Below, one piece after another: positions 1 through 55,655 of a stretch of 64,000 bases of DNA. The notes beneath the pieces were generated by a model, which saw only the letters and a list, made by a program, of their open reading frames with translations, searched no databases and was not told the origin of the DNA. Position 1 is the stretch's first letter, and each line of letters opens with the position of its first letter. The DNA comes from Heteronotia binoei (lineage: Eukaryota), in contig NC_083227.1 of NCBI RefSeq assembly GCF_032191835.1, positions 18,972,001-19,036,000 of the forward strand. Reading direction: 5' to 3'. The translations under genes were made by a program, and so were the position numbers.

Positions 1-274
1 TGTTTCCTCTTATGCCTGATCAGGCTGGACCCATCGCTGAAGCTGTTTCCGCACTCGGAGCACCGGAATGGCTTTTCTCCCGTATGGATCCTTTCGTGGG
101 TGCGAAGGTTGGATCTTTTCATGAAGCTTTTTGCACAGCACGAGCATTTGTGAGGCTTCTCTGCTGCATTCTGCGTTTCTTGTTTGATAAGATTCGGGTT
201 AACGCTGATGCTTTTCCCAAACCCTGAGTAATATGGCATTTGTCCCACGTGGATTCTTTCACGGCCATCTCCTG
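1..274 (-). CDS. Gene A last exon (partial): C2H2 zinc-finger array, continues past window edge
   Basis: Minus strand reads ttccag|CA GGA GAT (phase 1), then [96 protein letters not shown] acceptor at 272-276. Confidence 0.9.
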
Positions 275-875
275 CTGGAAGAAACAGAGAGCCAGGGCAT
301 TATATGCAAGTCTTTACCAGCTCGTTGTCAATCAAAAACAAATTCAGTCAAAAACTAGTAGGAAGAATTTAGTGTAGGGATCTCTGAGTTTGTTCAGTCT
401 TTGAGTAAGTCTCACAAAACTTTAGGAAGATGCATGCATGGAATCTCCTACTGTTTCTCTGCAGACATTGCCCTAGGAACAGGATACACAACTAGAGGTC
501 TGGGGCCAAATTCAGCTCCAGTGTCTTTCCATCTGGCCCCAGACATTGCCCCTGTTCCTAAAAATTCTCTCACACACTATTGTGCTCCTCAGATGCTTTC
601 TTCCAAGTCAGGAGGAAGGCAAAGGGTTCTTCAACCGCACTCTCCCCAAGAGATAGATCAAGATGGGTAGACACGTTTGTAAGCGCCAGAACAGTTTTAT
701 TGCTGCCAGATACATTTAATGTAACTTAAATTATGTATTTTAACTCAATTAACTGGTTTTTATGTTTAATTTTTTAACTGTTAAATTTAAAGTTTTACCT
801 ATTTATGTTAATGTATGGAATGTTGTTAGCCGCCCTGAGCCGCCTTGGCGGGGAGGGCGGGATACAAATAAAATC

Positions 876-2721: not shown

Positions 2722-2823
2722 CTGAGAGAGCCTCGTGGAGTATTTTGCTTCCCTCTGATCCTTGGCGATACGGAACGCATGGCTCCTCTTCTTCCTCCAG
2801 CTTCACAATCACATCAGGAAGCT
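2722..2823 (-). CDS. Gene A KRAB-B-like exon 3 (102 nt, phase 1-1)
   Basis: cctctcctcag|AG ... TCA G|gtaaga; encodes (E)LPDVIVKLEEEEEPCVPYRQGSEGSKILHEALS(G), open frame. Confidence 0.8.
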
Positions 2824-2887
2824 CTGAGGAGAGGACAGATAAAATATTCCAGCTGCAGGGGAAACAGTTTCAGTGCAAACCCTAAAC

Positions 2888-3458
2888 AAGGGGTGTCAAA
2901 CTCATTTATTATGAGGGAGGGATCTGACATAAATGAGACCTTGTTGGGCCAGGCCATGTGTATTCCTATTTAAGATTAGGTAGCAGAGATAGAAACTTTA
3001 TAAAGGACATAGACAAACACAATTAAGATTTCTTTAAAACTACTTAAGATAAAACATGCTTAAAACATTAGCACTCGTTGGTCTTAAAGGTGTTTTCTTT
3101 GTATTTCTCCTATGGGATCCAGGGAACTGGCCAAAGGAAGCTTTGGCTCTTTCTTTCTTTCCCCAGGGGACTAGGAGAGGGAGGAGCCTCAGCCAACAGA
3201 AGGAAGCGGGGCTTGCCTCAGTAGCTCTATTGTGCCATTGAGAGAGCCTGGCAAAGCAAACTTTGCCTCCCCCCAAGGGAGGAACCTCAGCCAATGGAGA
3301 AAATAGAGGTTTTGCTCTGTAGCTCCTGTGTGATTGAGCAAGCCTGGCAAAGCAAGCTGTGATGCAGAAGGCAGCAAGAGAGAGGGAGAAAGAAGCAGAT
3401 GACAGCCAGTCACTCGGGGGCCTGATACGACCCTCGGGCCGCATGTTTGACACCCCTG
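2888..3458. mobile_element. Non-autonomous hAT-type DNA transposon (MITE), CAGGGGTGTCAAAC TIR family
   Basis: Termini aaggggtgtcaaac / gtttgacacccctg; 8-bp TSD ccctaaac (2880-2887) vs ccctaaaa (3459-3466); homologous copies at 8297 and 60457. Confidence 0.85.
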
Positions 3459-3984
3459 CCCTAAAATGTGTCCTGATGGGCTCAAGACCCAGTCTCTGTA
3501 TCATGCCTCCCAGGTGACAAAGTCCAGCTCTGACCATTTTGAATGTTAAGGGTCTGTCCCAAAAAGCCAAGGAAGACTGGAGGGGTGGGACGTCCACCTG
3601 CCAGGGAAGGAGATCCAGCTGGTTTATCTGGTGTCTAATTCTGATTCTCTGTCTCTCTCCACCTTGTTATCTTTAGCAGTTGGGAGTGGAAGAAAGAACA
3701 GAATATAAATGGCTGAGAAGGACTACTAGTGATCAAAAGGAAATCTTATAAACTTTTTGGTGATGGCTTTAAAAAAAAGGCATCGGGCAAATATTATTTA
3801 ATAAAAAACAACAAAAGAGAAAAGCCCAACTGGAAGCTTCTTTGTCATGAGAAGAAGCCCTGCCAGATTCCTGTCAGGGAACAGGCTTTTGAGTTTTGGA
3901 CAGGGGCAGCTGGACTCTTTCTCACAAGGAAAGTTTAGCTCGGCTCTAGGAGTCTCTGTCCCCATGTTTTTTATGTTCCCTCAC

Positions 3985-4086
3985 CTGACCCATAGTCCGT
4001 TGGGATCTCCCTTTCCTCTGAAACAGGCTCTGGAATCCATGGATCTCCTCCATGGACCACCTCAGATTTGGGAATGGCAAATCCTG
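3985..4086 (-). CDS. Gene A KRAB-B-like exon 2 (102 nt, phase 1-1)
   Basis: ccttccttcag|CA GGA TTT ... TCA G|gtgagg; encodes (A)GFAIPKSEVVHGGDPWIPEPVSEEREIPTDYGS(G). Confidence 0.8.
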
Positions 4087-5703
4087 CTGAAGGAAGGAAG
4101 GAAGCAGACTTGATCAAAAGGAATTTGGTCCAATACCTGTCGCATCTTAATCATGCTCTGATTCTAGAACAGATGGAGCTATCTCTGGGTTGGAAACAGA
4201 ACTAATCACCAGATTGTACAAAGAGTTTGTGGAAAGGTTAGAGGAAAACCATCTCCCAAGACTTGTGAGAACCAATGGTTAGACTGTCAGACCTGAGTTC
4301 AAATCCTCACTTGGCCATGAAGTTCACTGAGTATCCATGGCCCAGTCACTCCCACTTAGCCTAACAACCTCACAGAGCTGTTGGAGGGGTAGAGAAACAG
4401 GTATGTTGTTGTAAATTCCAGTCATGATCCTAGGCTTAGTGAGGCCTACAGACTCTAGGGAAGCCTATATTAAATAAATAATAAGGGGCTGGAGCAAACT
4501 GCTTGCCCTCCTTTAATTGCACTGACTCTGAATTCTAGGCTTCAGGAGTTTCCTAGGATCCCTTCTGACCCTCTGATTGGGTGCGCAGCAGTTTTGGAGG
4601 GAAAACGAGGCCAGAGGGGTGGGACCTGGAAGGAAGGAAATTAAAGGCCCAGTTAGAGAGGGAGGGTTGTTCTCTCTGGAGGAAGGCTGCAGTCATGAGA
4701 GTTCCCTCATCCAAAGGGTGATGAATCAGTTGGAATTAGAGGAAGGGAACATATAGTTAATTGCTTTGGGGCTTTTTATTTATCTGATAACCAAGTGACT
4801 AGTCCCTATTGAAGGCATGAAAGCACATTCACAATGGGCTTCCTGATAGGGAGGGAAGGAGGACTGCATTTCATTTGGTTAATTAACAGAATATTCCCCC
4901 CAAGAAACCTTGATGAGGAATGGACTTTCCAGGAGTCAGTCATGGAAAGTGGAGAGCAATTCAGAGTCAGTGCAATTAAAGGAGGGCAAGCGGTTTGCTC
5001 CAGCCCCTTATTATTGACTACCTTTATAGTCCGCTTTTATAGCTGAGACTGAGGGCGGATCACACAACTAAAACACGATGCAATAAACATGGCTTGATAC
5101 AAATAAGCAACGTAATAAAACCAGATCACAAAATTTAAAAACAATGCAATTGTTCTATATAGTATAATAGATTCAAATAATGCAGAACACCCAGTGATAA
5201 ATTCAGAGAACACAAACACACCAGGGAAATGGTGGTAGAAAGTGCCATCAAGTTATAGTTGACTTATGGCTACTCTCTAGGATTTTCAAGGCAAGAGACG
5301 CTTAGAGGTGATTTCCCATTGCCTGCCTCTAATGGCATAGTAAATACAACAACTGGTGCAATTAAACAGGATTACAAAACCAAATCCTGAGAAGATGTAA
5401 TTAAGAGCATCGGAAACCTGCTGGGCTTGTTTTCTATAATTTTTTTTAATGTGGATCATTCAGAACAGAAAGCCACTCCCTGCAAAATGCTGTACTACAG
5501 TCCAGTCCACCTCTGCATGCTACCAATATTAGAAAACCAGGCAGTTCCTTAAGTTTTGTTGTCCAACAGTCCAGCCTTGAGAATGTTCAGAGTCAATGAG
5601 CAAAGGCTGATTTATCATGCAGTTGACACCTTGAAAGGTTAAAAAGAAGAGGAGACTCAGCATATTCATCTGTGCATCACAATTTACTGGAGCCAGCCCT
5701 CAC

Positions 5704-5805
5704 CTGAGCAGGTACCAGTGAAGGTCTCGCTTTCCTCCGATCCCTGGTTGTTTGGCAGCCAGGGGACCTCTTCATCTTCGAGCTTTATCACCACATGGGG
5801 AAAGT
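5704..5805 (-). CDS. Gene A KRAB-B-like exon 1 (102 nt, phase 1-1)
   Basis: ttctcctgatcag|AC TTT ... TCA G|gtgagg; encodes FPHVVIKLEDEEVPWLPNNQGSEESETFTGTCS(G). Confidence 0.8.
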
Positions 5806-8296: not shown

Positions 8297-8759
8297 TGGG
8301 GGTGTCGAACTCATTTGTTATGAGGACGGATCTGTTATAAACGAGACCTTGTCGGGCTGGGCTATGTGTGTATCTATTTAATATTAGGTAGCAGAGATAT
8401 AAACTTTTAAAAGGACACAGACAAAAACAACTAAAAAAAACATGCTTAAAACATTAGTACTTCTTGGTCTTAAAGGTGCTTTCTTTTATTTCTCCCATGG
8501 GATCCAAGGAACTGGGCAAAGGAAGCTCTGGCTCTTTCCTTCCTTCCCCAGGAAGGGGAGGAGCCTCAACCAATGCAGAAAATTGTGGTTTTGCTCAGTA
8601 GCTCCTGTGCGATTGAGCAAGCCTTGCAAAGCAAGCTGAGATGCAAAAGGAAGCAAGAGAGAGGGAGAAGGAAGCAGACAAGAGCCAGTTGCTCGAGGGC
8701 CTGATAAGAGCCCTCTGGGGGCCTGATTCAGTCCCCAGGCCACATGTTTGACACCCCTG
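8297..8759. mobile_element. hAT MITE (CAGGGGTGTCAAAC family) inserted in a CR1 3' fragment
   Basis: Perfect 8-bp TSD ggctagag at 8289-8296 and 8760-8767; CR1-like sequence resumes on both sides. Confidence 0.85.
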
Positions 8760-9316
8760 GGCTAGAGGAACTCTGGTCAGGGATGCTTTAGGTTGATTCT
8801 TCATTGAGCAGGGGTTTACAACTCATGGCCTGTAATGGCTCCTTCCAACACTATGATTCCATCATTGTATGAACCTGGGACCTTTCATTAGCAAACCCCA
8901 TACTGTACCATGGAGCGCTGGTCTTGGGAAGCTTGGGCCAGGCCTGGTTTCCCTTCCTTGCTTCTCAGCACTGGTAACAGGATGATCAGGTGCAAAGACA
9001 GAGAGGGCTCTTGTGTCTTTCATAAGGCAATTTCTGTAGGGGCCAACTTTCTCTGCAGGGTTTCAGGAAGGCTTGCCTTCTCAGCACCATTACTTTTTAA
9101 AATTGGAGATGCTACCTATGGATATGAGAACCCTGGCATCCACAGCTGGTGTTCTGACCACTGGGTTATGGGTCCTTTCAAAGCTGCTGCCACCAAGAGT
9201 GCCAGATGTTGGGTTGGTAGGGGCACTTGAGCAGAGAGCCTTTAATAGCCCTCATAGCACTGGGAATATGAATCTAGCCTTCATCGCTGTTGCTCTACAA
9301 CACAGGAGAAAATATA

Positions 9317-9945: not shown

Positions 9946-10957
9946 ATACTATAGAGCTGGAAAGGACCTCCAGGGTCCTTGAGTCCAACCCCCTGCACAA
10001 TGCAGGGAATTCAAAAGTACCTCCCCCCCCCATCCCCAATGACCCCGTTCCATATCCAGAAGATGCCAACCCCCCCCAAAAAAACCCTCCAGGATCCTTG
10101 GCCAAACTGGCCAAGAAAAAAATTGCTGCCTGACCCCAAAGAGGTGATCAGCATCTCCTTGGGCAAGTAAGAAAGGGCCCTGAGAACTAAGCCCTGATGC
10201 AACCCTTCCTGCCCTCTTCCTTCTCATGATCTGCCTAAGTTCGCAGAATCAGCATTTCTGTCAGATGGCCATCTAACCTCTCTTTTAAAAACTTCAAAGA
10301 AGGAGAGACCACCACCTTCTGAGGAAGCCTGTTTCACTGAAGAACCCCTCTGTCAGGAAGTTCTTCCTAATGTTTAGCTGGAAACTCTTCCATTGGTTCT
10401 GGTCCAACCTTCTGGGGCCATAGAAAGAAAAAAGTTCCACTCCATCCTCTACATGACAAAGTACTCGAAGATGGTGACCATATCACCTCTCAGTCATCTC
10501 CTCTCCAGGCTAAACATACCCAGCTCCTTCACCCTTTCCTCATAGGACCTTCTCTCATCACGTTCCAGCTTATCTATATCCTTATTAAATTGTGGTGCCC
10601 CAAACTGAACAAAATACTCTAGGTGAGGTCCAACCAGAGCAGAGTAAAGCAATACCATCATTTTGCATGATCTGGACACTATACGTCTGTTGATGTGGCC
10701 CAAAATTGCATTTGCCTTTTTTAGCTACCACGTCACCCTGCTAACTCATGTCTATGAAGAACCCTACGTCCTTTTCGCACGTAGTGCCACCAAGACAAGT
10801 CTCCCCCATCCTGTAATTATGCGTCTGATATTTTTCCTAGGCAGAACTTTACACTTATCCCTGTTAAAATTCATTTTATTGGTTTTAGCCCTGTTTTCCA
10901 GTCGGTCAAGATCACCCTGTACTGTGACTCTGTCTTCTACTGTATTTGTGACCCCTC
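9946..10957 (-). mobile_element. CR1 LINE 3' fragment, family A
   Basis: Minus ORF remnant GHINRRIVSRSCKMMVLLYSALVGPHLEYFVQFGAPQFNKDIDKLER; 3' UTR shared with 26872-27710. Confidence 0.85.
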
Positions 10958-11775: not shown

Positions 11776-11989
11776 CTTCAGAGGCAGACAAAGAATTCCC
11801 CCCACCAGCACTTGAGTCAAAAAAGGCTGCATGCCAATGCTCTGGAACAAAAGCATCTTTAAAGTGTTACCAGGCACTTTACATTATCTTTAAGGGCTAG
11901 ACACAAAGACCCCTCTGTAATTATTATCTTGTAAACTAAAACTTTGCAAGACTTGAACAATGCTGTTAATAATACAATGTTTTGGAGGT

Positions 11990-12725
11990 CACAAATAAAA
12001 AAGGCCAGCGCCATGCTGGGAATTATTAGGAAGGGAATTGAAAACAAATCAGCCAGCATCATAATGCCCCTGTATAAATCGATGGTGCAGTCTCATTTGG
12101 AGTACTGTGTACAATTCTGGTCACCACACCTCAAAAAAGATATAGCATTGGAAAAAGTCCAGAAAAGTGCAACTAGAATGATTAAAGGTATGGAACACTT
12201 TCCCTATGAAGAAAGGTTAAAACGCTTGGGGCTCTTTAGCTTGGAGAAACATCGACTGTGGGGTGACATGATGGAGGTTTACAAGATTATGCGTGGGATG
12301 GAGAAAGTAGAGAAAGAAGTACTTTTCTCCCTTTCTCACAATACAAGAACTCCTGGGCGTTCAATGAAATTGCTGAGAAGTTAGGTTAAAACGGATAAAA
12401 GGAAGTACCCAAAAGGGTGATTAACATGTTAATTCATTGCCACAGGAGGTGGTAGTGGCTACAAGCATAGCCAGCTTCAAGAGGGGACTGGATAAAAATA
12501 TGGAGCAGAGGTCCATCAGTGACTATTAGCCACAGTATATTATTGGAACTGTCTGGGGCAGTGATGCTCTGTATTCTTGGTGCGGGGGGGGGGGGGGACA
12601 AAGTGGAAGGGCTTCTAGACCCACTTGTGAACCTCCTGATGGTGCTTGGTTTTTTGTTTTTGGCCACCATGTGACATGGACTGGATGGGCCATTGGCCTG
12701 ATCCAACATGGCTTCTCTTATGTTC
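11990..12725 (+). mobile_element. CR1 LINE 3' fragment, family B
   Basis: ORF 11944-12384 contains AMLGIIRKGIENKSASIIMPLYKSMVQSHLEYCVQFWSPHLKKDI...ERLKRLGLFSLEK, a CR1 ORF2 C-terminus. Confidence 0.9.
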
Positions 12726-18477: not shown

Positions 18478-19570
18478 TATTGTGTTCATTTTGGGGCACT
18501 ACAATTTAAGAAAGATACAGACAAGCTGGAACAGATCCAGAGGAGGGCGATGAAGATGGTGAGGGGTCTGGAGACCAAGTCCTATGAAGAAAGGTTGAAG
18601 ATTGAAGTAGACAAAGAAGTACTTTTCTCCCTTTCTCACAATACAAGAACTCGTGGGCATTCAATGAAATTGCTGAGCAGTCAGGTTAAAACGGATAAAA
18701 GGAAGTACTTCTTCACCCAAAGGGTGATTAACGTGGAATTCACTGCCACAGGAGGTGGTGGCGGCTACAAGCATAGCCAGCTTTAAGAGGGGATTGGATA
18801 AAAATATGGAGCAGAGGTCCATCNNNNNNNNNNNNNNNNNNNNNNNNNNNNNNNNNNNNNNNNNNNNNNNNNNNNNNNNNNNNNNNNNNNNNNNNNNNNN
18901 NNNNNNNNNNNNNNNNNNNNNNNNNNNNNNNNNNNNNNNNNNNNNNNNNNNNACAGTGTTGGAGTGGATGGGCCATTGGCCTGATCCAACATGGCTTCTC
19001 TTATGTTCTTATGAGCTGTGTATGTTTAACCTGGAGAGGAGGCAGCTGAGAGGTGATATGATCACCATGTTCAAGTAATTGAAGGGCTGTCATATAGAGG
19101 ATTGTGCGGAGTTGTTTTGTTGCCCCAGAAGGTCAGATCAGAACCAACAGGTTGAAATTAGTGTTTTCGACTAAACGTAAGGACTTCCTGACAGAATGAT
19201 TCCTCAGTGGAACAGGCTTCCTCGGGAGGTAGCAGGCTCTCCTTTGGAAGTTTTTAAACAGAGGCTAGATGGCTCTCTGACAGACAGCAATGCTGATTCT
19301 GTGAACTTGGGCAGATCATGGGAGGGCGGGCTGGAGGGGTTGCATCAGTGCTTAGCTCTTGTGGCCCTTTCTTGCACACCTAGGGAAATGTTGTACATCA
19401 CTTGGGGGTCAGGTAGAGATTTTTCTCCAGGCCAGTTTGGCCAGGGATCATGGAGGGGTGTTTTGCAGTCTTCTGGGCACGGAGCAGGGTGTGTGTGAGA
19501 GGAAATTACTTGTGAATTTCCTGCATTGTGCAGGGGATTGGACTAGATGACCCTGGAGGTCTCTTCCAAC
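18478..19570 (+). mobile_element. CR1 family A fragment interrupted by a CR1 family B fragment (18601-19012)
   Basis: gaaaggttgaag (ends 18600) rejoins gagctgtgtatgtttaacctggagagg (19013), restoring ERLKELxMFNLERR; the insert ends in ggcttctcttatgttcttat. Confidence 0.8.
18824..18952. other. Assembly gap (129 N)
   Basis: Run of n inside the CR1-B 3' UTR. Confidence 1.
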
Positions 19571-22221: not shown

Positions 22222-24186
22222 GTAAGGCAGAAGGCGGGGAATAGGGATGGTGGTGCTGCTATCCCATCCCTGGTCTGTCTTGGGATTCTGTTCTTAACAA
22301 TCCTGTGAGGTAGTGTAGGCTAAGAAAGAGCGACTGGCTGCCTGGAAGTCCCCCTATGGCGTTGTAGGGATTGAATCCCACGTCCGCTAGGGTTGCCAGC
22401 CTCCAGGTAGGGCCTGGAGACCTCCCGCTTTCACAATAGATCTCCACCTGACAGAGATCAGCTGTCCTGGAGAAAATGGCAGCTTTGAAGGGTGGACTCT
22501 GTAGTATTGCACCATGTTGAGGCCCCTCCCCTCCCCAAACCCTCTCTTGGATCCACCCCCAAAGTCTCCAGGTATTTTCCAACACAGACCTGATAGCCCC
22601 ACACGTCCCTTCTGCGCAAGCCGAAGGGGCTTCCACATTCTCTCTTTCAAAAGTTAATTTTAAAAGCTTTTCCACGCTTTTTTGGAGGGGAGGGGAGGAC
22701 TTTGAATTGGTGACTACAGCAACAGCATTAAGAACATAAGAGCATAAGAGAAGCCACGTTGGATCAGGCCAATGGCCCATCCAGTCCAACACTCTGTATC
22801 ACACAGTGGCCAAAAATTTATATATATATATACACACACACACATACTGTGGCTAATAGCCACTGATGGACCTCTGCTCCATATTTTTATCTAACCCCAT
22901 TGCAGATGCTTCTATGGTTTTCTATGCATCAAATTAGATGCTTTCTTTATGGTTTCCTCCCACTACCACTACACCACATAGCAGGTGTATGTAGGGGGAG
23001 GTGTTTGTGAGTTTCCTGCATTGGGCAGGGGGTTGGACTAGATGACCCTAGAGGTCCCTTCCAACTCTATGATTCTACATAGCAGTTTTCTTTGTGACTA
23101 GCTGCAATGAAGAACAGACCTCTCAGTTTGCGTGGTCATTTCTGTGTCTGGAACTACCTGAGCTGGAACTATGCGAGCTTCCAGGTCACCAACCTGGAAC
23201 AGGCACCTCAGCAAGTTAAAAATGATGGTGGACTTGCACAGGTTATTAAATGCCAGCTCTCTGAATGTCAAAAATATATTAAAAGACTTTTTGAGAAGTA
23301 CTTCTTTCACCCTTTTACTCCAGTGCTCAGTGATGAAGGAAAAGCATCATGTATATGCTCAGAGACATTTGGATTATATATTGTTACTTCTCAGACAGTG
23401 TGAGGGAAAATCTTTCTCTTCTTGAAATTCTGGCAAAAGTAGACAATATTGAAATATGTAGGCCAAAGTTTTGACTGGGTATTTGTTAAATCGACTTTTT
23501 TTGTAGCAGGAACTCCTTTGCATATTAGGCTACACTCCCCCTGATGTAGCTAATCCTCCTGGAGCGTACAGTAGGCCTTGTACTAAAAGCCTTGTATGCT
23601 CTTGGAAGATTGGCTACAGCAGGGGTGTGTGGCCTAATATGCAAAAAAAGCCCTGGATCTCCCTAAGGTAACTATGATTAAAAAAATAAATCATGCAATC
23701 ATTTAAAAAATAAGAATCATCAATATTACAATGAGACATTAAAAACAAACCAAGGATATAAAAACAGCATGAATGCCATAAAACAGTATCTACAAATGAT
23801 CAAAAGCTAATCACTAGACTGTACACATTAATAAAGATTCAAAATGTAATTACGTGTGTTCAAGGAAAATCCCAAAGACAAAAATATGCAAGTGTTAACA
23901 TATTTTTTTGAACAAACATGTTAGGCAGGCCATGAAAACAACTAACAATGGAACTGCTTAGTTAAAAATCTGGATGAAAAGAAGTGTTTTGGTCTAGTGT
24001 CTAAAAGAACATCAGGTGAGCCTCAAGTGGGGAGAACATTCCAGGGTACGGTGCCACCCCTAAAAAGGCCCCATCTGTGGTTACCATGTACCTTAACTGT
24101 GCAGGCATGGAATGGTCAGCTTCCCTAAGCATACCTAGCCAAATTGGTTTTCTCTTCCAGTGTCTTATGTGTATTCAGGAGTGAAA

Positions 24187-24909
24187 ATGGAGGAAGCGAA
24201 TGCACCAAAAGCAGTTCTTCGGGAGAGGCTGGAAGGAAGAGGAAGAGACCTTCATGTCCTGAAGGTTGGGACTGTGAGGGAATTTCTCCCTGGGCCCGGC
24301 CTACAACAAGTTAAGCAGAAAACTGAAGAGGGGTTTCAACAGCCCTGGGAAGACCAATGGCAGGCACTTCTCAAGGCAGTGGCATCTCCCCCCTCACAAG
24401 GTGGAAATCCATGCAAGCTGGAGTCCTCAGGCGGGGGTGAGACTAAAGATTTTCAGCCCTCCTCTGATGGAGAAACTGCTGCCAACCAGAGGTCTGGGGG
24501 AGAGGGAGAGTCCCACAGCCTGCTGAGCCTGAATGGAGACACTCTGCAGGTCTCTGGGAGACTGGGAGACTCTTCTGGGACAGTGAAAGAAGAGACTGTG
24601 GATGAGGACGATGTTGGTTTGGAAGTATGGCAGCAGCGCTTCAGGACTTTCTGCTATGAGGAGCACGGGGGTCCTCGACACGCTTTCGGCCATCTCCAGA
24701 AACTCTGCCATCAGTGGCTGAAACCAGAGAGGCACACCAAGGAGCAGATCCTGGAGCTGCTGATCCTGGAACAGTTCCTAGTCATCCTTCCACAGGAAAT
24801 GCAAAGCTGGGTGAAGGAACATGACCCCAAGAGTTGCACCTGGGCAGTGAGCTTGGCAGAGGATTTCCTGAGGAGAAGGCCCGAAGAAACCGAGACGCAG
24901 GAACAACAG
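24187..24909 (+). CDS. Gene B exon: N-terminus plus SCAN domain (SCAN-ZNF, predicted 684 aa in total)
   Basis: Acceptor ttttctcttccag at 24160, aaaATGG start, SCAN motif [62 protein letters not shown]; phase-0 donor cag|gtgagg. Confidence 0.92.
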
Positions 24910-25039
24910 GTGAGGCTGTTATCACAATCCCTGGAGGCCCAAGGATGGCTTCCACGCCTCTGTCCCTCTCATGCAGAATGGCAGGAACTCCGTTGAGCTT
25001 TCTCATGGTCTGTCTGATGTCATGTGTATGACCTATGTA

Positions 25040-25330
25040 AAAAAAAGGTAAAGGTAGTCCCCTGTGCAAGCACCAAGCGTTACTGACTCATGGGGTGATG
25101 TCACATCATGATGTTTTCTTGGCAGACTTTTTTGTTACGGGGTGGTTTGCCATTGCCTTCCCCAGTCAGCAAGCTGGGTACTCATTTTACTGACCTCGGA
25201 AGGACGGAAGCTGAGCCAACCTTGAACCTTGAACTACCTGAACCCAGCTTCTGCCAGGATCGAACTCAGGTAGTGAGCAGAGCTTGGACTGCAGTACTGC
25301 AGCTTATCACTCTGCACTACAGGGCTCCTG
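25040..25330 (-). mobile_element. Sauria SINE with 11-bp TSD
   Basis: TSD tgacctatgta at 25029-25039 and 25331-25341; aaaggtaaaggt is the reverse complement of the ACCTTT tail. Confidence 0.85.
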
Positions 25331-26404
25331 TGACCTATGTACCTAGGTGTTTATACCAGCAAATTCCCCAAGAATATGGAATGTTTCTGAACATTCCAAG
25401 ACAGCCTCTTGGGGTCACAAGAGGCTTCATCGCTGAGACAGCGATGAAAGCCTTTACCGTGTTACAACACGGGTGGAAAAGATTTTGACTGGCCAGGTCA
25501 GGAAGTATTTGCCGCACAGGTGTTACAGGAGGGTTTTTCATCTATACTTTCTTTATTTATTTTAGTATATTTGTATTCTGTCCATTCCTCGTAGGTACAA
25601 CATATGATAAAACAATAAAAAACAATAAAAACATTTTATAAGCAAACAACTCAACAGTGTGACTTTTGCTGCCCCAGCTCTTTTCTAAAATGTCATGCTT
25701 GGAGAGATTTTACTTGTGCAGGGAGTCACAAATAAAACCAGTCCGTTATCTGCTGCTCTTGGTACCTTCCCACACACTCCCACCTCCAGTGGGGGAAGTC
25801 CACATAATCCATATATCTGAGCCATGACTTGTGCAGACTTGGCGTTCTGTCAAGTAATCCTACAAACCAGTAACACTTCACCTAACTAATACAGAGGAAG
25901 TGTGACTACCTCCTAGCCCTGATATACCAGCACCAGCTTCTGGATTTTATTTTATTTATTCTATTTAGCGGATTTATATTCTGCCCTTTCTCATATGGGT
26001 TCAGGGTGGATTACAGGCATAAAAACAGATAAAATACACAATAAATTAATAGTCTACAATTAAACAATTACAACTCACTAAAAAATGTAATACAGGCGGG
26101 ACAGGGCACATTTTGCAAATTAAAACATAGTTAACAGCCCAAATATAATTGTTCAGATGGTAAGTCATGGTGGGGGAAGACAATAGGTGATATTATAGAC
26201 AATAAAAAGAGAGGATGCCCGCTTGCCTCAGCCAAGGCCTGGCGGAACAGCTCCATCTTACAGGCCCTACGGAATGGTTACCAGTAGGGCCCGGATCTCC
26301 ATGGGGAGCTGATTCCACCAGGTCGGGGCCAGGGCTGAAAAAGCCCTGGCCTTTGAGGTAAGTCAGACATTCTTTGGGACATTCTGTTGATATTTCTGTT
26401 CTAG

Positions 26405-26528
26405 GCATTGGTGTCGTTTGCCAAGGAGGAGAAGTTGGAGAATTTGTCCAAGACTGAGCAGCAGCCATTGGACGGTGTGAAAGCTGAGCCCACTGGAGAG
26501 GACAGTGACAGGGACGCCACCTTGAAGG
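26405..26528 (+). CDS. Gene B middle exon (124 nt, phase 0-1), vestigial KRAB-A-like
   Basis: tttctgttctag|GCA ... AAG G|gtaaga; encodes ALVSFAKEEKLENLSKTEQQPLDGVKAEPTGEDSDRDATLK(G); the phases join the SCAN exon to the ZNF exon. Confidence 0.75.
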
Positions 26529-26871
26529 GTAAGAAGTCACAGGCCTAAATTACTGAATACTGCACAGTTCCTGGAGTAAATCTAGCATGCACACACAAAC
26601 ACACTCTCCACTGTGGTGTGCTACACAAAGTGTCAGATTAGGGCTGAGAAAAAATCTTCTGAAGGAATTATCTGCCCTGGTTAGCATAGTTTAATGACTA
26701 ACAGTGTAATTCCAAGCATAATTGCACTTTTCCACTTTCACTAAAGCTTAGAAAGGTAAAACGCTGCTTAGGAAAGCGCTGCAGAGAACAAATCAGGACC
26801 TGGGAGGGTACTGGTTCAAATCTTGGCAGCTGCCTCAAACTGACCAGGTGGCCCTAAGCAAGCCACCCTAG

Positions 26872-27710
26872 AATCATAGAATCACAGAGTTGGAAGGGAC
26901 CTCTAGGATCATCTAGTCCAACCCCTTCACAATGCAGGAAACTCAAACACCTCCCCCCAAATTCACAGGATCTTCATTGCTGTCAGATGGCCATCTTGCC
27001 TCTGTTTAAAAACCTCCAAGGAAGGAGAGCCCACCACCTCCTGAGGAGGCCTGTTCCACTGAGGAATTGCTCTAATGGTCAGGAAGTTCTTCCTAATATT
27101 GAGCCAGAAACTCTTTTGATTTAATTTCAACCCATTGGTTCTGGTCCTACCTTCCAGGGCCACAGAAAACAATTCCACACCATCCTCTATATGACAGCCC
27201 TTCAAGTACTTGAAGATGGTGATCATATCACCTCTCAGCCACCTCCTCTCCAGGCTAAACATGCCTAGTTCCTTCAACCTTTCTTCATAGGTCTTGGTTT
27301 CCAGACCCGTCACCATCTTCATCGCCCTCCTCTGGACCCGTTCCAGCTTGTCTATATTCTTCTTAAAATGTGGTGTCCAAAACTGAACACAATACTCCAG
27401 GTGAGGTCTTACCAGAGCAGAGTAAAGCGATACCATCACATCACATGATCTGGACACTATACTTCTGTTGATACAACCCAAAATTGCATTTGCCTTTTTA
27501 GTCACCACATCTCACTGTTGACTCATGTTCAGCATATGATCCACTAAGACCCCTAGATCTTTTTCGCACATACTGTTACTAAGACAAGTATCCTCCATCC
27601 TATAACCATGCATTGGATTTTTCCTACCTAAATGCAGAACTTTACATTTATCCCTGTTAAAATTCATTTTATTGATTTTAGCCCAGTTTTCCAGCCTGTC
27701 AAGGTCATCC
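26872..27710 (-). mobile_element. CR1 LINE 3' fragment, family A
   Basis: ORF 26963-27508: AILGCINRSIVSRSCDVMVSLYSALVRPHLEYCVQFWTPHFKKNIDKLERVQRRA...; tail ttctatgattct. Confidence 0.92.
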
Positions 27711-28015
27711 TCAGTTAAACATTAAAACATCAATAAAACAAAATTTAAAACCACAGATTAATTTGGTGCTACAAATATAACATAGCTTTGCATAGTGATG
27801 GTATAATTCCGCATTAAAAAGCCAGCTGGAAGAGGCATCTGGGGTAGGAGGATGTTTATTTGTTTATTTGAACCATTTGAGTGGGGCTTTTCTGCTACTT
27901 CATTCAAAGTGGTTTAGAATTAAGCAGGGCTTTTGTTGTAGCAGGAACTCCTTTGCATATTAGGCCACACCTCCCTGATGTAGCCAGTCCTCCTGGAGCA
28001 TTTAGTTCTTAATTG

Positions 28016-28197
28016 CAGGGCTTTTTTTATAGCAGGAACTCCTTTGCATATTAGGCCACACCTCCCTGATGTAGCCAGTCCTCCTGGAGCTTACAGTAGG
28101 CCCTTTACTAAGAGCCTTGTAAGCTCTTGGAGGATTGGCTACATCAGGGGTGTGTGGCCTAATATGCAAAGGAGTTCCTGCTATAAAAAAAGCCCTG
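28016..28197. mobile_element. CAGGGCTTTTT-TIR hAT-like MITE
   Basis: Termini cagggctttttt / aaaaaagccctg. Relatives at 29248-29364 (TSD gttgagac/gttgagat), 56355-56553 (TSD actaccat/actactat), and ~23495-23660, 35522-35705, 42600-42783. Confidence 0.75.
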
Positions 28198-29604
28198 CAA
28201 TTAAGAACTAAACCTGCAATACAATATACACAACAGGGGGTCAGAAAAGGGAAGAGGAAACAAAGCAAATTCCGATTCATTAGGTAGTTTTCTGGTGTAG
28301 GCTGGGAAGAGATTCCTGGAGACAGAGAACCCTTATTTTATTTACGTATAATATGTATACCCTACCATCCCATAAAACATACATTCAAAGTGGTGTACAA
28401 CCTTCCATTAAAACAATAAACGCAATAAAATAAAAAATAAAAACAACAAAAAGCAATAAAAGCAACCAAGAAGAGAGTGCATATGCTAAAACAACAGCCC
28501 TTAGAGAAACCAGATACAGCAGACAGAAGATAAAATAGATGACAACTGTCAGCATCTATAAAAGCCTTCAGTCACAGCTGAAGTCAGATGATATAACGCT
28601 CCACTAAAGTATCTTGAGGCAGATGTAAAGACTTTGAGAGAGGAAAAGTGTTTTTCCTGGCATGCCTGAGCTTGCAGAACTAGCACCAGGCCAGTTTTTG
28701 GGGGGAGAGTGTTCACAAGCTTTGGTGCTACCCCAGAGCAAGGCCTGCTTTTTCTGCTCACCCACTTTGCCAGTGACTGCTCAGATGGTTTCCTGAGCCC
28801 AGATGGCATAGGTTTCTACTAATAACAACTAACCCTTTGAATCCTTAAATGGCTATAACAGCTAAAAACTGGTTAAGATGCTATGTGCCACAGAGGAGAT
28901 CAGCTTCAGAGAGCCAGTTTGGTGTAGTGGTTATGAGTGGTGGACTCTAATCTGGATTGATTCCCCATTCCTCTTCCACATGCAGCCTGCTGGGTGACCT
29001 TGGATCAGTCACAGCTCTTGAAAGGGCTCCTCTCTCAAGAGCAGTTCTCGAAAGAGCTCTCTCAGCCCCACCTACCTCACATCACAGGGTATCTGTTGTA
29101 GAGAGAAGGAGGGAGGAAGATTGTAAGCTGCTCTGAGACTCTGAGTAAAGGGCGAGGTCTAAATGCAATCTCTTCTTCTTCAGTCTAAAAGAATGTCAGA
29201 GATAAGATGAATGATGGAAGGGTGCAGCGTACACAATCAGTTGAGACCAGGGCTTTTTTGAGCAGAAACGCACAGGAAAGCAGTTCTGGCTGGCTTGGTG
29301 TCAGGAGGTGTGGCCTAATATGCAAATGAGTTCCTGCTGGGCTTTTTCTACAAAACAAGCCCTGGTTGAGATACCAGAACTTAAGGAGCGGATGGGTGAA
29401 AGTGAAATGGGTGGAGGAGATCCAGCAGACTTCGAAGGGGTTTTGAAGTGACCACATTGAAATCGCAACAGGCTATGTATTGTACAGGGGGGAATTCAGC
29501 TGATTCTTTGGCAGTAGGTTTTCTCATTTTCCTGTATTTTCTGTTTTACTGTCTACTCTCCTCACAAACAAAGCCTGTTTCACGTTTTCCGCTTCTTCCT
29601 ACAG

Positions 29605-30812
29605 AGCCTGAGCACAGCCAGCTTGCCGAAGAAAAGAAAGCCTATCAGTGCTCTCGCTGTGAGAAAAGCTTCCTCTGGAGATCCCACCTCACAAGGCATG
29701 AGAGGACACACACGGGAGAGAAACTGTACGGCTGCTCAACTTGTGCAAAAAGCTTTGCTCAGGCATCCCATCTTGCCATCCACGAGAGAACCCATACGGG
29801 AGAGAAACCGTATAAATGTACAGTGTGTGGGAAAAGCTTCAACCAGAGTTCAGTCCTTTCCCGACACATGAAGAGCCACACAGGGGAGAGAGGGGGCAAA
29901 GGCTGTGAGAAAAGCCAGGAGAGGTCACCTCTTACAAAATACATAACGACCCTCACAGGAGAGAAATTATATCAATGTTCATGGTGCGAGAAAACCTTCA
30001 AGCAAAGGTCTCAACTCCCCAAACATGAAAGGATCCATACAGGAGAGAAACCGTTTTCATGTTTGATGTGTGGGAAGAGTTTCATTGCCAATTCCGATCT
30101 GACTGTTCATGAGAGAATCCATACGGGGCAAAAACCGTACACGTGCTCCTATTGCAGCAGGGGCTTCAGTAACAGTTCGGCTCTTTCGAAACACAAAAGG
30201 TCCCACACGGGAGAGAAACCGTATAAATGCCTGACCTGCGGGAAAGGCTTCAGCGACACTTCAGACCTCACCAAGCATAAAAGGACCCATACGGGAGAGA
30301 AGCCATACCAGTGCTCTGAGTGCGAGAAAAGGTTCAGTGACAGCTCACAGCTGGCGAAACATGAGAGGACACACATGGAGGAGAAGCCATACAAATGCTT
30401 TGTCTGTGGGAAAGGCTTCCGTGAAAGCTATCGCCTCATTAGACACAAGATAAGCCACACAGGAGACAAGCCCTACGCTTGCGCAGTCTGTGGGAAACGC
30501 TTCATTGACCAATCAGGCTGTGAGAAACACAAGAAAAGTCACACGGGCGAGAAGCCACACAAGTGCTCAGTCTGCAGCAGAAGCTTCAGTGCGAGATCAA
30601 ACCTTCTCAGCCATCGCAGAGCCCACACAGGAGTGAAGCCGTACAAGTGTGCCGTCTGTGGGAAAAGTTTGAGCCGACAATCGCACCTCCTTAACCATCA
30701 CAAAACACACACCGGAGAAAAACCTTATAAGTGTGTTGACTGCGGCAGAAGCTTCATTCAAAAAACACAGCTTCTTATCCACGAAAGAACCCACAAGATG
30801 GACAGTCCATGA
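29605..30812 (+). CDS. Gene B last exon: 13 C2H2 fingers plus one degenerate finger
   Basis: Acceptor cttcttcctacag|AG (phase 1); repeated CxxC...HxxxH with TGEKP linkers; stop at 30810-30812. Confidence 0.95.
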
Positions 30813-38848: not shown

Positions 38849-38975
38849 ATGCCTGTGAATTTTAAGGAAACTGCTGTATATTTTGGGGAACAGCAAGGGA
38901 CTTTGCTGGAACAAGGTCAAAGGGTTCTGCAGAAGAGCACTATGCAGGAAAAAGATGGAGAAGTAGCCTTTTTAG
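38849..38975 (+). CDS. Gene C divergent KRAB-A exon (127 nt)
   Basis: tttgtctttcag|ATG CCT GTG AAT TTT...TTA G|gtaaga; MPVNFKETAVYFGEQQGTLLEQGQRVLQKSTMQEKDGEVAFL(G). It may be preceded by an unseen phase-0 exon. Confidence 0.8.
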
Positions 38976-40238
38976 GTAAGAATCTTTTAGCCCCTGGAAG
39001 GCTTGGATAGAGGTGTGATTTGCCCTGAAGGGGAAAAAAAATCATGTCCCTTTAATAGAGCCTTATCAGGATACTTTTATCAGGTGATGTTTATAAGCAT
39101 CATGACCATGAGAAGCTTCAGCCACCCTTTCCTTACATGTTTAGTCTCTGTCAAAAGGGTTCACAAGGGTTCCCCCCTCCATTATGCGTATATAATTTTA
39201 TTAAGCACAGCTTGCATTATACAGGCTTAAATTCAGGTGTATTAAATTCTTCACACATGAACACACTATGCTTGAACACACTATACTCATGAGGGAATGA
39301 AAATTATTTTAGTGCCTCCAAAACAAATACAGAGATTTGGCATGCGAGCAGCCTGAGACAATCGCATGATTGGACAACTCTGTCACTTGCAAGCCAGTGA
39401 TTTGAAATGTACCTCAGGAATCTGCCAGTTGGAGAGCAGCCAACCCACATCATCATTCACAACAAAATTGCTCACAGAGAAAGAGTTACCAAGAGAGTGT
39501 TGATCAACTTTGCAGTATCCAAAAAGAGATATGACAGTTTGACTGATAGAATACAGAGCCCCAGAGACGTGTGACATGGCTGTTATTATCTATCATTGAT
39601 CATATTTGTATCCCACCCCTAACTCTTCATTCAGGGACTTAGAGCAGCAGTTACAGATTTATCCTGTTCTTTTGACTAGAAATGTAATACTTGGAGATTA
39701 GTCTGATCCTTAAGGCTTAAAATCTTCTGTCATATCCTTGTCGTTTGCTGTTGGAAGTGTTTGTGGATAGTTTCAAGGTGGATAAGAAATCTGAGATGAA
39801 CAGGGAGTAGTGAACATCTGCTCCCTGTTCATCTCAGATTACTTATTTACTCTGAAACGATCCGCAAACATTCCCAATAGCAAATGACAAGAATATGACA
39901 GAAGATTTTAAGTGGAAGCCTTCAGGATCAGACTAATCAGCCCATCTACTCCAGTGTCCTGTTTCTTACAATGGCCAAGTTTGTCAGCCTCTAGAAGGCC
40001 TACAAAGCTGAAAGTTCCAGTGACATTCAGAGGCATGGAGGTTCTGTTTGGCTATTGTTGGATTTATCATTAATGAATTTGCCTCCTTTCATAGACATCT
40101 AAGCCTGTAACCATCATTATGTCCCATTTTATAGGTTAATGATGCATTCTCTGTCTTTATTAATAATTAAATTAAATTATTATAATAATAATTAAAAATA
40201 AGGGGGAGAAAAAATCAATTATTTGTTTCTCCTAATAG

Positions 40239-42244
40239 GCAATGGACTGGCGAGTGAAAATAAAGAGGATCATCAGGTACAAAGAACTGAGGAAGAAGAA
40301 CAGATGTTGTCGAGAAGAGGTGAGATGTCGATTTCTCACTGTCATGACGCAGGAGAGATGGCTGTGAATCGTCACAGACCAGAGAGGCATCTGGGAAACC
40401 CCCTAGCAAAGAAAATGGACACCACCATTCCTTGTGCTGAGGCGTTGCAGGATCTTAGCAAAGGCACAATCCACAAGCGAACCCGCAAATCTCAGAGTCC
40501 AAGGACGTGCAATGAGTGTGGGAAAACTTTTGCCCAGGCTTCGAATTTTTTGGCACACAAAAGAATCCATACAGGTGAGAAGCCATATAAATGTTCACAC
40601 TGTGGGAAAAGCTTCACAGAAAGGTCCAACCGTAACAGGCATCAGAGAACCCATTCAGGAGAAAAACCATATCAGTGTGTGGACTGTGGGAAAAGCTTCA
40701 GCTTTTGGTCAGACCTCATTAGGCATGGGATTACCCATACAGGAGAGAGACCGTACAAATGTTCAGACTGTGGGAAAAGCTTCAGCCATGCCTCTACTCT
40801 TATTAGGCATGAGAATATCCATACAGGAGAGAAACCGTATTCCTGTACGGACTGTGGAAAAAGCTTCACCCAGAGTTCCTCCCTTTTAGCGCACAAAAGG
40901 TTGCACACAGGAGAGACGCCGTTCATATGCCCCGTGTGTGGAGAGACCTTCAACTGGAAATCACACCTGGTGACGCATAAGAGAATCCATTCAGGGGAGA
41001 GACCATATAAATGCGCCAAGTGTGGGAAATGTTTCATTGAAAAGTCCAAGCTGAATAGACATCAGAGGACCCATACAGAGAAAGAACTTTACGAATGCTC
41101 GGAATGTGGGCGAGTCTTTAGCATTAGATCCAACCTCATTCGGCATGAAATAGCCCACAGGGGAGAGAAATCGTACATGTGTTTAAGCTGTGGGAAACGC
41201 TTCAATCAGTCCTCCAAGCTGATGAGGCATGAAAGGATTCACACTGGAGAAAAACCCTATTCCTGCACGGATTGTGGAAAGAGCTTCAGCCAGACCTCCG
41301 AACTGCTTAGGCACGAGAGAATCCACACTGGAGAAAAACCGTATAAATGCACCATTTGTGGGAAGAATTTCAATCGGAGATCCCACCTTAATACACATAA
41401 AGCAACCCATATTGGAGGCCAGCCATGCAAATGGGCAGACGGTGCAGCACTCTATCATTCTGGTTCACTCCATATTACTGGGATGAATACTCCGCAGCAG
41501 GTTTCTACAAGGGACCAGCCTCATAAATGCTTGGCAAATGAAGAACGGTACAATCCTGGCTCACTTCTTGTTGCTGGCCTGAATCTGAACAGGCAGACAC
41601 ACACAGGCGGACAGTTGTACAAATGCCCGAACAACGAAACAAGCTACAGCCATTGTTCCTTCCTTGTTGCGAGTGTGACTCCACAAGAGAGGATCCTTAC
41701 AAAAGACTCGCCATATAAATTCTCAGGCCAGGAAACAAACTGCAGACACAGCAGCCCTTTGTTTATGGCCCATGTGGACACTCAAGAAGACTTGCTTGCG
41801 AGACGTCGGCCATATAAATGTCTCAGCGGTGGCCGAAGCGAAGATGACCCCTCCCTCATTATAACAGATGTGAGCACTCACCAAGAAGAAAAAGTGTTTA
41901 AATGCTCCGAGTGTGAAAAGACCTTCTGTTGGAGATCTCACTTCATTCGCCACAAGAGAATCCACACAGGTGAAAAACCGTATCGTTGTGTGGACTGTGG
42001 GAAAAGCTTCAACCGGAGTTCACACCTCGTTCGACATGGAAGGACTCATGAGGGGCTGAGACGGTACATTCAGGCTGAGGAAGAAACCTCAGCTGAAGAT
42101 CGACTTCTTTTTAACACAAATGAATCTGGACAGGAGGTTGATCATACAGACACACGGCCTGAAGGAGGAGTGTCTGTTGTGACTCACACCATGTTACACA
42201 CCAGAGAATTTGTAAAGGAGACAAATCTTGCAGATGTTCAGTGA
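40239..42244 (+). CDS. Gene C last exon: 11 fingers, five decayed repeats, 2 fingers, acidic tail
   Basis: Acceptor tttgtttctcctaatag|GC (phase 1); uninterrupted ORF to stop 42242-42244. Confidence 0.95.
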
Positions 42245-52076: not shown

Positions 52077-52226
<150 letters not shown>

Positions 52227-53393
52227 TGAGAGACTTTGCTGGGCTCACAAAATCCAGGAGGTTCAGGTAGGAAATACCACTTTCCCCTTCCTACTCCGCC
52301 AGATATCCTAGCTCCGCTTTCTTCTGTCACACAAGGAGGGCTCAGACAACATACTAGTTTATCCCTGAAGCTGACTGAAGGTCAAACTAAGCATAACTTT
52401 TGCATGTGTGTGTTAAGGTTACTTTGGCAAATACTTTATTTTACTTCATGTACACCCTACCTTTCTCCCCAGTGGAGATCTAAAATGGCTTATGTCATTC
52501 TCCTTTCCTCCATTTTTTCCTCACAACAACCCTGTGAGGGAGGTTAGTCTGAGAGGGTGTGACTGGCCCTAGGTCAGCCAGGGAGCTTCTGCAGTGGAGT
52601 GGGGTTTCGAACCTGGGTGTCCTGGATCTGAATCTGAAGTTTCAACCACTGTAGCTCACTGTTGTTGTGACTGCCCCAATACTTTTTCAAAGAAAATGGG
52701 AGGAGAGGAATTTTTGCTCACAAGACTCCACAGCTTAGAGGCAGTATTGGTCACTGGGTGTGTGTGTGTATGGGAGGTACCTGTGAATTTCCTGCAATGA
52801 ACAGAGTTGGACTAGATGACCCTAGAGGCCCCTTCCAACTCTATGATTTTATTATTCTCTTACCATTTTCTCACTGAAAAAAGGTACCTCTGTGCTGCTG
52901 TTACGCCTGCTGAGGGGAAAATTGCAGCTGTTCCTAAGTTCTGAGGTGATAGGATGGAGTGTACAACTTTTAGATTGGGGGTGGGGGCGGTGTGCAAAGG
53001 TAATTATATTTTTAAATGATCCCTTACCTAAACCTCAGGCTGTTGTACCAGCTCAAGATTCTGTGACCTTATTCAGTTTTATCATGTCTGCGCATGTAGC
53101 ATAATGGGGTGAGGTGTCATATTTTAAATGCTACATCCAACTAGGAAACCAGAGATAGAGATTCCTGGAAGTGGGTGCTGGGGGAAAACGTCCCTAGGAT
53201 TCTTCTTACTCATCGTCTGTTGAAGTCTTGGCAGGACAGTTTCCCAGTGGTTGCTTCCAGAGGGATAGCTTCCCACAATTTCATGGTCCTTAGTATTGCA
53301 GGACAGCTTCTGTGATCCAGAGGTTCACAGCTTCTGTGATCCAGAAATGGAACAGAATTCCTGTGACTCTCCCTGCTTCTTTTCTTCTGCCAG

Positions 53394-53510
53394 CAGGATT
53401 TTCCCTTTCAAAGCCATCCTTGATCTACTTCCTGGAACGAGGGGAAGTGCTGTGGGAACCTGATCAGCAACAAATCAGAGCCAGGGAGATCCTGTCAGGC
53501 ATCAGCTCAG
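53394..53510 (+). CDS. Gene D KRAB-B exon (117 nt)
   Basis: ttttcttctgccag|CA ... TCA G|gtgagg; AGFSLSKPSLIYFLERGEVLWEPDQQQIRAREILSGISS(G). Confidence 0.9.
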
Positions 53511-54969: not shown

Positions 54970-55270
54970 TTAAATTGCCTGGATTATCTGAACTGTGGGG
55001 TTAATCTCATCCCCAGTCACACGCCATTGGTTTCTCATGGCCTTGGTCCCTCATATCTGCAGAACGGCCTCTCCCGTGCACTCCACCACAGTGGCTTCGC
55101 TCGTCTCAGCAGGGCCTTCTGCAGGTGCCAGCCTGCAGATGGGCAAAATCAACAACTGCTCGTACATGTGCCTTCTCTGTTGTGGCCCCCTCACCTTATG
55201 AAATGGCCTGCCTGAAGAGATTAGGAAGGCTCCCATTCTCATGGCTTTCCACAAACTATGCAAAACATAT
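54970..55270 (+). mobile_element. L2 LINE 3' fragment
   Basis: Decayed ORF2 end (HGLGPSYLQ..., ctgcaggtgcc..., tgtggccccc...). Other L2 pieces lie on the minus strand at ~23990-24110, 26190-26360 and 28540-28810. Confidence 0.5.
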
Positions 55271-55303
55271 TCAAGAGGGTAAGGTAGATGTGTTGGTCTG
55301 AAG

Positions 55304-55655
55304 CAGGGGTGGCCAAACTTGCTTAACATAAGAACCACATAGAATAAATGTCAGATGTTTGAGAGCCACAAGATATGAATGTCAGATGTTTGAGAGCCAC
55401 AAGATATGAATGTCAGATGTTTGAAAGCCACAAGACAGGGAGGAAGGGAGGAAAACGGTGAGGTGGAAAGAAAGCAACTTTAACGTTAAATGCATTCTCT
55501 AAGCCATTGGCTGGCTTGGCTCGGAGAAGTACTGTAATTTAGAAAGATAAATGCCTTTTCCAAGCTTGCTGATGAGGCTGTGGGGGCTTGGAGAGCCACA
55601 CAGTATGTGTGAAAGAGCCACATGTGGCTCCTGAGCCATAGTTTGGCCACCCCTG
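55304..55655. mobile_element. hAT MITE, CAGGGGTGGCCAAAC TIR, inserted in a Penelope terminus
   Basis: Perfect TSD gtctgaag at 55296-55303 and 55656-55663. A relative lies at 59315-59630. Confidence 0.85.

Follow-up and report, generated by a model that had tools for sequence, protein, structure and literature searches.

A gecko zinc-finger gene with three KRAB-B-derived exons in tandem behind a relic of the KRAB-A exon

The 64,000-nucleotide stretch of Heteronotia binoei DNA analysed here (contig NC_083227.1, positions 18,972,001 to 19,036,000; hereafter the window, to which all positions refer) carries on its minus strand a putative C2H2 zinc-finger gene that leaves the window at its first base. 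The features of this gene are, in the direction of transcription, a relic of a KRAB-A exon, three exons of 102 nucleotides (nt) that are related to the KRAB-B box (e1, e2 and e3), and the beginning of a zinc-finger exon. A slash in the splice-site notation marks the end of the exon, and B' denotes a subtype of KRAB-B that is defined below.

7535-7401, minus strand: KRAB-A relic and first coding exon, 135 nt, good acceptor, donor A/gtaagg, phase 1
5805-5704, minus strand: exon e1, 102 nt, phase 1-1, B' subtype of KRAB-B, peptide FPHVVIKLEDEEVPWLPNNQGSEESETFTGTCS
4086-3985, minus strand: exon e2, 102 nt, phase 1-1, canonical KRAB-B type with a 4-residue deletion, peptide GFAIPKSEVVHGGDPWIPEPVSEEREIPTDYGS
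4083-4088, minus strand: tandem NAGNAG acceptor (cagCAG) of e2, with a 99-nt version of e2 from the acceptor at 4083
2823-2722, minus strand: exon e3, 102 nt, phase 1-1, B' subtype of KRAB-B, peptide LPDVIVKLEEEEEPCVPYRQGSEGSKILHEALS
271-276, minus strand: tandem NAGNAG acceptor (cagCAG) of the finger exon
1..274, minus strand: start of the zinc-finger exon, acceptor before 274, or 271 by NAGNAG, phase 1, exits the window start

The three exons contain no stops when two bases close the first codon and one base opens the last. Upstream of each there is a pyrimidine-rich tract with a YAG acceptor, and the donors read G/GTGAGG or G/GTAAGA. Both strands of the window (128 kb) were screened with a strict filter, which demanded AG, 102 nt, GT, an open frame in phase 1-1, at least 9 of 12 pyrimidines, YAG and G/GTRAG, and e1, e2 and e3 were the sole passes. 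A loose filter (AG, 102 nt, GT, open frame) returned 122 stretches from the same two strands. Widening the permitted length to 45-260 nt brought in, on the minus strand, nothing beyond the 99-nt form of e2 and an unrelated site at about 59 kb. An earlier note on this DNA had described three stop-free, phase 1-1 exons of 102 nt with good acceptors and donors, and all of this was reproduced.

The direct alignment of e1 with e3, also claimed in that note, was recovered with 56% identity over 25 amino acids (E 2e-6, searched against the whole window). A further match of e1 (E 1e-3) is to the KRAB-B exon of a plus-strand gene of the window, which is a complete KRAB-ZNF gene. The resemblance of e2 to e1 and e3 is weak, and its start is like that of a canonical B box (GFxxPK...DPW). 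The introns flanking e1 and e3 could not be aligned with each other, which argues that the duplication relating these two exons is old. Their ratio of nonsynonymous to synonymous substitution rates (dN/dS) is 0.21, a rough value from 33 codons with dS saturated at ~1.8. The net charge is -6 for e1, -5 for e2 and -5 for e3, or about -16 across the region.

The Pfam KRAB model covers box A only and Pfam holds none for box B, so that the peptides of e1, e2 and e3 gave no Pfam match and the assignment to KRAB-B was made from a profile search and alignment. The profile was built from an alignment (A1) of the three exon peptides and the B exon of the plus-strand gene, and was run against a representative library of 1.84 billion proteins; the window exons were searched as separate peptides, and the joined chain was examined in public proteins only. 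At E<=1e-3 the profile matched 334 proteins, among them KRAB-B boxes of turtles, crocodilians and lizards. In the 160 proteins that were examined, 219 units were detected, 104 of which lie directly behind a KRAB-A C-terminal signature and are therefore ordinary KRAB-B boxes. Along their full length, e1 and e3 are 45-73% identical to B boxes of turtles and lizards, and the likeness extends to the QGSEExEIL tail (...PDLQGSEEREIL.G.C). A KRAB-B box on its own phase 1-1 exon is thus present three times in the gecko gene.

In alignment A1, e2 has a gap of 4 residues in the middle of the exon, and e1 and e3 are without the first 5 residues. Since these gaps differ, the length of 102 nt was reached through different deletions from a B exon of ~114-117 nt. 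A tree of 41 units was calculated from few columns, so that only its well-supported groups count. Exon e2 and its orthologues form a clade (100/100) inside the canonical-B group (97/89), and the orthologues of e1 and of e3 form clades of their own (95/91 and 100/95, respectively). The e1 and e3 clades fall outside the canonical-B group, in an unresolved remainder together with squamate-only units (77/63, weak). Judged by their sequences, e1 and e3 are a squamate subtype of KRAB-B with the pattern FPxVxIKxE...EEPW, which we name B'.

The first coding exon was recognised because the orthologous proteins described below begin with MASL. Both ends of the relic, including the splice sites, match the nucleotide sequence of the KRAB-A exon of the plus-strand gene, one with 71% identity over 45 nt (E 1e-3) and the other with 68% over 37 nt (E 1e-2), and its tail, ...LYQQENCSNMASL, can be compared with the KRAB-A end ...LYxDVMxENYxNxxSL. 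The old KRAB-A frame is broken by stops and a change of frame, reading PAQSDLEDVAGRSIN before a stop in one frame and IFKWVLYQQENCSNMASL after a stop in another. The only coding part possible is M-A-S-L plus one base A (ATG-GCT-TCT-TTG-A, 7413-7401), with the ATG at 7413-7411 in the context AACATGG and an in-frame stop 13 codons upstream. This start codon lies inside the former ...VMxENYxNMxSL end of the KRAB-A exon, at the Met of NMASL, and the part upstream of it is non-coding. A search of the upstream minus strand of the window with regular expressions and tblastn found no coding KRAB-A or SCAN. The gecko gene has no coding KRAB-A box (Pfam PF01352), and none of the three orthologous proteins matches Pfam KRAB. 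The earlier description of a KRAB-ZNF gene with extra B exons has to be abandoned, because the KRAB-A exon is dead. Neither the promoter nor the non-coding 5' sequence, of one exon or more, was located; CpG-rich candidate sites lie at 13.3-14.0, 16.8-17.7 and 21.8-22.5 kb.

At the other end of the gene, the open frame of the finger exon (GDGRERIH...KPHKCSCC...) encodes a linker that includes a decayed finger, followed by two C2H2 fingers. On positions 272-2 of the minus strand Pfam reports zf-H2C2_2 with 41.9 bits and zf-C2H2 with 31.1 bits, so that the last exon holds a C2H2 finger array, two fingers of which lie within the window.

Orthologues with the same exon order were obtained from three other lizards. 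A word search with residues 17-123 of the Phrynocephalus protein, in a length window that tops out at ~330 amino acids, returned 4 proteins.

Gekko kuhli, KAL8213244.1 (P0001): MASLD, e1, e2 and e3, then an intronic tail
Phrynocephalus forsythii, KAJ7303376.1 (P0004): ...FMQENHRNMAALE, e1, e2 and e3, then an unrelated tail
Podarcis muralis, RefSeq XP_028573489.1 (P0157): MASLE, e1, e2, e3 and the finger exon

In the Podarcis protein, residues 107-177 follow directly after e3, begin at the predicted acceptor and are 76% identical over 71 amino acids to the finger exon of the window. Because this model runs into the orthologous finger exon, the full proposed chain exists as one public model. The assignment of the exons to KRAB-B within a single zinc-finger gene, as made in the earlier note, is borne out by this chain together with the profile matches and the units behind KRAB-A.

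The identity of e1 is 31/33 with G. kuhli, 21/34 with Podarcis and 21/34 with Phrynocephalus; that of e2 is 32/33, 27/33 and 29/33, and that of e3 is 27/33, 19/33 and 20/33, in the same order. Exon e1 has 34 codons (105 nt) in both non-gecko lizards, so that the equal length of the three exons, which had been put forward as a feature of the gene, is a coincidence confined to geckos and arrived at by different deletions. Geckos split from lacertids and agamids ~200 million years ago. With position-specific orthologues of each exon in Gekkota, Lacertidae and Agamidae, the layout predates the split between geckos and the other lizards and would be roughly 200 million years old. The maintenance of open frames, phases and order over this time, with an e2 identity of 80-90%, indicates purifying selection on the exons. 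The suggestion that their open frames reflect selection is in this way upheld, by the 27-29 of 33 e2 residues shared between gecko and non-gecko lizards and, roughly, by the dN/dS of e1 and e3.

The closing part of the G. kuhli model (VERMLDHEWGGPVRIPSLLWSSQKLQS...) corresponds to intron sequence at ~2509-2594 on the minus strand, between e3 and the finger exon (VVGMLDHKWGDPVQIPTLLQSSQKLES). A terminal exon mispredicted within a repeat is the probable explanation, rather than a genuine alternative end. Residues 177-193 of the Podarcis protein, behind its first finger, follow the frame of the minus-strand open reading frame at 10-147 in the window and then reach a stop, which amounts to a one-base shift relative to the gecko.

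The tandem acceptors bear on how the exons are joined. An extra Ala before e2 is present in the gecko and agama models and is absent at both junctions in the Podarcis model, as would be expected if the downstream NAGNAG acceptor were used at e2. The tandem acceptors and this difference between the models make one-residue isoforms at e2 and the finger exon likely. They also qualify the statement that all three exons end in Ser-Gly: each exon closes with a complete Ser codon and a G that opens the split codon, but the next residue is Ala (GCA) before e2 or the finger exon when the upstream acceptors are used, and Gly only with the downstream NAGNAG.

The one-residue difference between Podarcis and the gecko and agama models would also fit a model, raised in the earlier note, in which the three frame-neutral exons are cassettes, variably included or skipped to give N-termini with one, two or three acidic modules. 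Every exon is phase 1-1 and a multiple of 3, and any combination stays in frame. A relative in G. kuhli (P0013) has the e1 and e3 types without e2; its sequence, however, differs from that of P0001, so that it is a paralogue, and it was ruled out as an isoform. All three orthologous models contain all three exons, and each exon is conserved in its own position, as is expected of constitutive exons. We consider variable use of the exons as cassettes unlikely.

Taken together, we propose, with a probability of about 0.8, that this is a real and old C2H2 zinc-finger gene, descended from a KRAB-ZNF, which has lost its coding KRAB-A and kept three KRAB-B-derived exons. Translation would begin inside the former KRAB-A exon, at the Met of its terminal '...NMASL'; the three frame-neutral exons would then follow in the order B'-B-B', all three normally being included, and lead into the finger exon. 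The three exons would form an acidic region of ~100-105 residues, probably disordered, that would act as the effector part of the protein without KRAB-A-based recruitment of TRIM28/KAP1. With KRAB-A gone, recruitment of TRIM28 through it by the gecko protein is unlikely. In the KRAB-KAP1 complex, KRAB-B is disordered or mobile (PMC9753469). An AlphaFold2 (AF2) model of the Podarcis protein, calculated from a four-sequence alignment, has a mean pLDDT (predicted local distance difference test) of 53 and leaves the B part without secondary structure.

Both B' exons contain a core of the form hydrophobic-K-x-E, namely VVIKLEDEEVP in e1 (IKLE) and VIVKLEEEEEP in e3 (VKLE); e2 has only PKSE, which does not fit. 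Among five related public models, 10 of 10 units of the e1 and e3 types possess the core, as do most of the B' units in further lizard proteins, and its Lys is invariant across all e1 and e3 orthologues. It is followed by an acidic run (DEE, EEEE), with a Pro 4 residues upstream of the hydrophobic residue and another 5 residues downstream of the E. A SUMO-acceptor or synergy-control motif consists of hydrophobic-K-x-E with acidic residues downstream and Pro on both sides, the published Pro spacing being one residue shorter. The mechanism that we prefer, as a possible though doubtful one, has the two B' exons serve as SUMO-acceptor modules and the protein act by SUMO-dependent repression or damping. 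Conjugation of SUMO at the B' exons would recruit co-repressors or damp activation, in a manner comparable to K189 of human ZNF746. This SUMO-acceptor lysine lies in exon 5, just behind the KRAB box, and is required for repression by the N-terminal half of ZNF746, which does not stably bind TRIM28 (PMC6923878). KRAB-B alone is non-repressing and boosts KRAB-A by an unknown mechanism (PMC6923878).

The same finding that KRAB-B alone lacks repressor activity (PMC6923878) would suit a different role, in which the three acidic modules with their Trp and Leu residues form a transactivation domain and the former repressor has become an activator. The modules EDEEVPWLP, GGDPWIPEP and EEEEEPCVP, with the charges given above, place conserved aromatic or hydrophobic residues beside acidic runs, in a region predicted by AF2 to be disordered. 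No homology to a characterised activation domain was found, however, and a conserved Lys in a SUMO-type context usually accompanies dampened activation. An activation region of this kind is rather unlikely in our estimate, and it can coexist with SUMO modification.

Several observations weigh against the proposed gene and its mechanism. The finger exon exits the window after two fingers, and the gene can be seen to be intact only to that point. The G. kuhli and Phrynocephalus models are 'hypothetical protein' predictions that stop short of the finger exon, and the Podarcis protein has a single finger before it ends in a shifted frame, which may reflect decay of the gene in some lineages or an error of assembly. 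The AF2 model leaves the zinc finger unfolded too, and with only four sequences behind it is weak evidence for disorder. The hydrophobic-K-x-E core is also found in some ordinary KRAB-B boxes (P0024, P0061), and it is therefore neither specific to B' nor proof of a SUMO site; the SUMO idea has this motif as its sole basis.

The broken KRAB-A exon, the end of the Podarcis model after one finger and the degenerate first 'finger' of the last exon would all be expected if the three exons were remnants of a dying KRAB-ZNF, open by chance or through recent origin. We regard such decay as very improbable. The three exons are open with intact splice sites, their order and sequence are kept across lineages that split ~200 million years ago, and the MASL start is common to gecko and lacertid; neutral sequence would not remain open or alignable for so long.

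The role of KRAB-B has been unclear since the 1990s, and the gecko gene can be regarded as a natural experiment on it. That KRAB-A was destroyed and yet three B-derived exons were kept in order and in frame for ~200 million years suggests that the KRAB-B-derived segment has a function of its own, apart from KRAB-A. The region of ~105 residues is a short and testable effector candidate. Going beyond this one gene, squamate KRAB-B might be an autonomous, TRIM28-independent effector, arrayed as frame-neutral B' exons with SUMO-acceptor or SUMO-interacting repeats, an idea that we rate as rather improbable. If it were true, such genes would constitute a separate zinc-finger effector class that current domain libraries miss. 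Catalogues based on Pfam KRAB would label such genes 'ZNF-only', and reptile counts of effector-less zinc-finger genes may consequently be inflated.

Three further zinc-finger genes lie in the window, all on the plus strand and each with one B exon or none.

24160-30812, plus strand: SCAN-ZNF gene, SCAN exon 24160-24996, fingers 29448-30812
38855-42244, plus strand: zinc-finger gene, weak KRAB-A 38855-38977 (26 bits), fingers 40223-42244 including a decayed-finger stretch
52077-58669, plus strand: complete KRAB-ZNF gene, KRAB-A 52077-52205, B 53394-53510 (117 nt), exon of 18-finger scale 56636-58669

One interspersed repeat is present in three copies, at 3040-3597 (minus strand), 8442-8804 and 60550-61098 (minus strand), with long spurious open reading frames (...SASFSLSLAAFCITACFARLAQSHRSY...); the first copy is intronic and lies between e2 and e3. 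Remnants of the C-terminal part of retrotransposon reverse transcriptases (...HLEYCVQFW.PH.KKDI...) and an L1-type tail were found at 11944-12384 (plus strand) and at 26963-27508, 10494-10703 and 61909-62976 (all minus strand); the L1-type ORF2 tail among them has 355 amino acids and a CWKC...HMWWTC motif. A run of 129 N at 18824-18952, an assembly gap or mask, separates the minus-strand gene from the SCAN gene.

Outside the window, 20 of the 160 proteins examined have directly consecutive B units that are not separated by a KRAB-A, and these proteins fall into the following groups.

Turtles, KRAB-A + B + B: Pelodiscus XP_075765397.1, Platysternon, Caretta
Turtle Gopherus, XP_050776333.1: SCAN-KRAB-B-B-fingers
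Alligator, ZNF783 / ZNF282-like: tandem B-type units
Squamates, 2-4 B' units: Sphaerodactylus townsendi A0ACB8EGF1, Pogona vitticeps XP_078244534.1, Lerista edwardsae KAJ6652731/35, G. kuhli KAL8213200
Tiliqua scincoides, XP_066468624.1 (P0118): KRAB-A relic start MQENYENVASVG, one B, two B' and a piggyBac-type transposase

Tandem B exons are thus no peculiarity of the gecko gene, since they also appear in turtle, crocodilian, skink, agamid and other gecko models. Pfam detects no domain in the multi-B' proteins of Sphaerodactylus, Pogona and Lerista or in G. kuhli KAL8213200. The transposase domain of the Tiliqua protein (DDE_Tnp_1_7, 238 bits) implies that a multi-B module has there been attached to a DNA-binding partner other than zinc fingers. 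In the literature searched, no paper on tandem KRAB-B exons or on multi-B genes without KRAB-A was found. A survey of lizard zinc-finger genes from 2014 used models from KRAB-A, -B, -b, -C and -L matrices and does not mention the layout (PMC3971581). The tandem B layout is shared by other reptile genes in public annotation, but apparently it has not been discussed in print.

We have compared the gecko gene with known systems. In the human ZNF746/ZNF777 group, small exons 5-6 behind the KRAB box aid repression in proteins whose KRAB-A is truncated or weak and which do not bind TRIM28 stably (PMC6923878). The gecko gene differs from this group in having no DUF3669; the likeness is an analogy of mechanism and not one of membership, and homology with exon 5 is not implied. 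A turtle protein (P0085), named 'zinc finger protein 184-like' and with a KRAB region like that of the alligator ZNF783 model, has B-like units with IKQEEEP cores. The sauropsid two-B models of Pelodiscus, Gopherus, Caretta, Platysternon and Alligator share with the gecko gene tandem B-type units without KRAB-A between them; they keep, however, an intact KRAB-A (Pfam KRAB), and their two units are of canonical type and are not arranged as B'-B-B'. The squamate multi-B' proteins resemble it in their arrays of FPxVxIKxE...EEPW units, often without KRAB-A. They are encoded by separate genes, in which a canonical B usually comes first, whereas the gecko gene has a B' ahead of its canonical-type exon. 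With a canonical KRAB-ZNF, such as the complete plus-strand gene of the window, the gecko gene has in common small phase-1 N-terminal exons and the placement of all fingers in the last exon, and its relic and e2 are homologous to the KRAB-A and KRAB-B exons and share the positions of their splice sites. It departs from that plan in that its KRAB-A is non-coding save for the last four codons, and in that it has three B-type exons in place of one, two of them of the shortened subtype.

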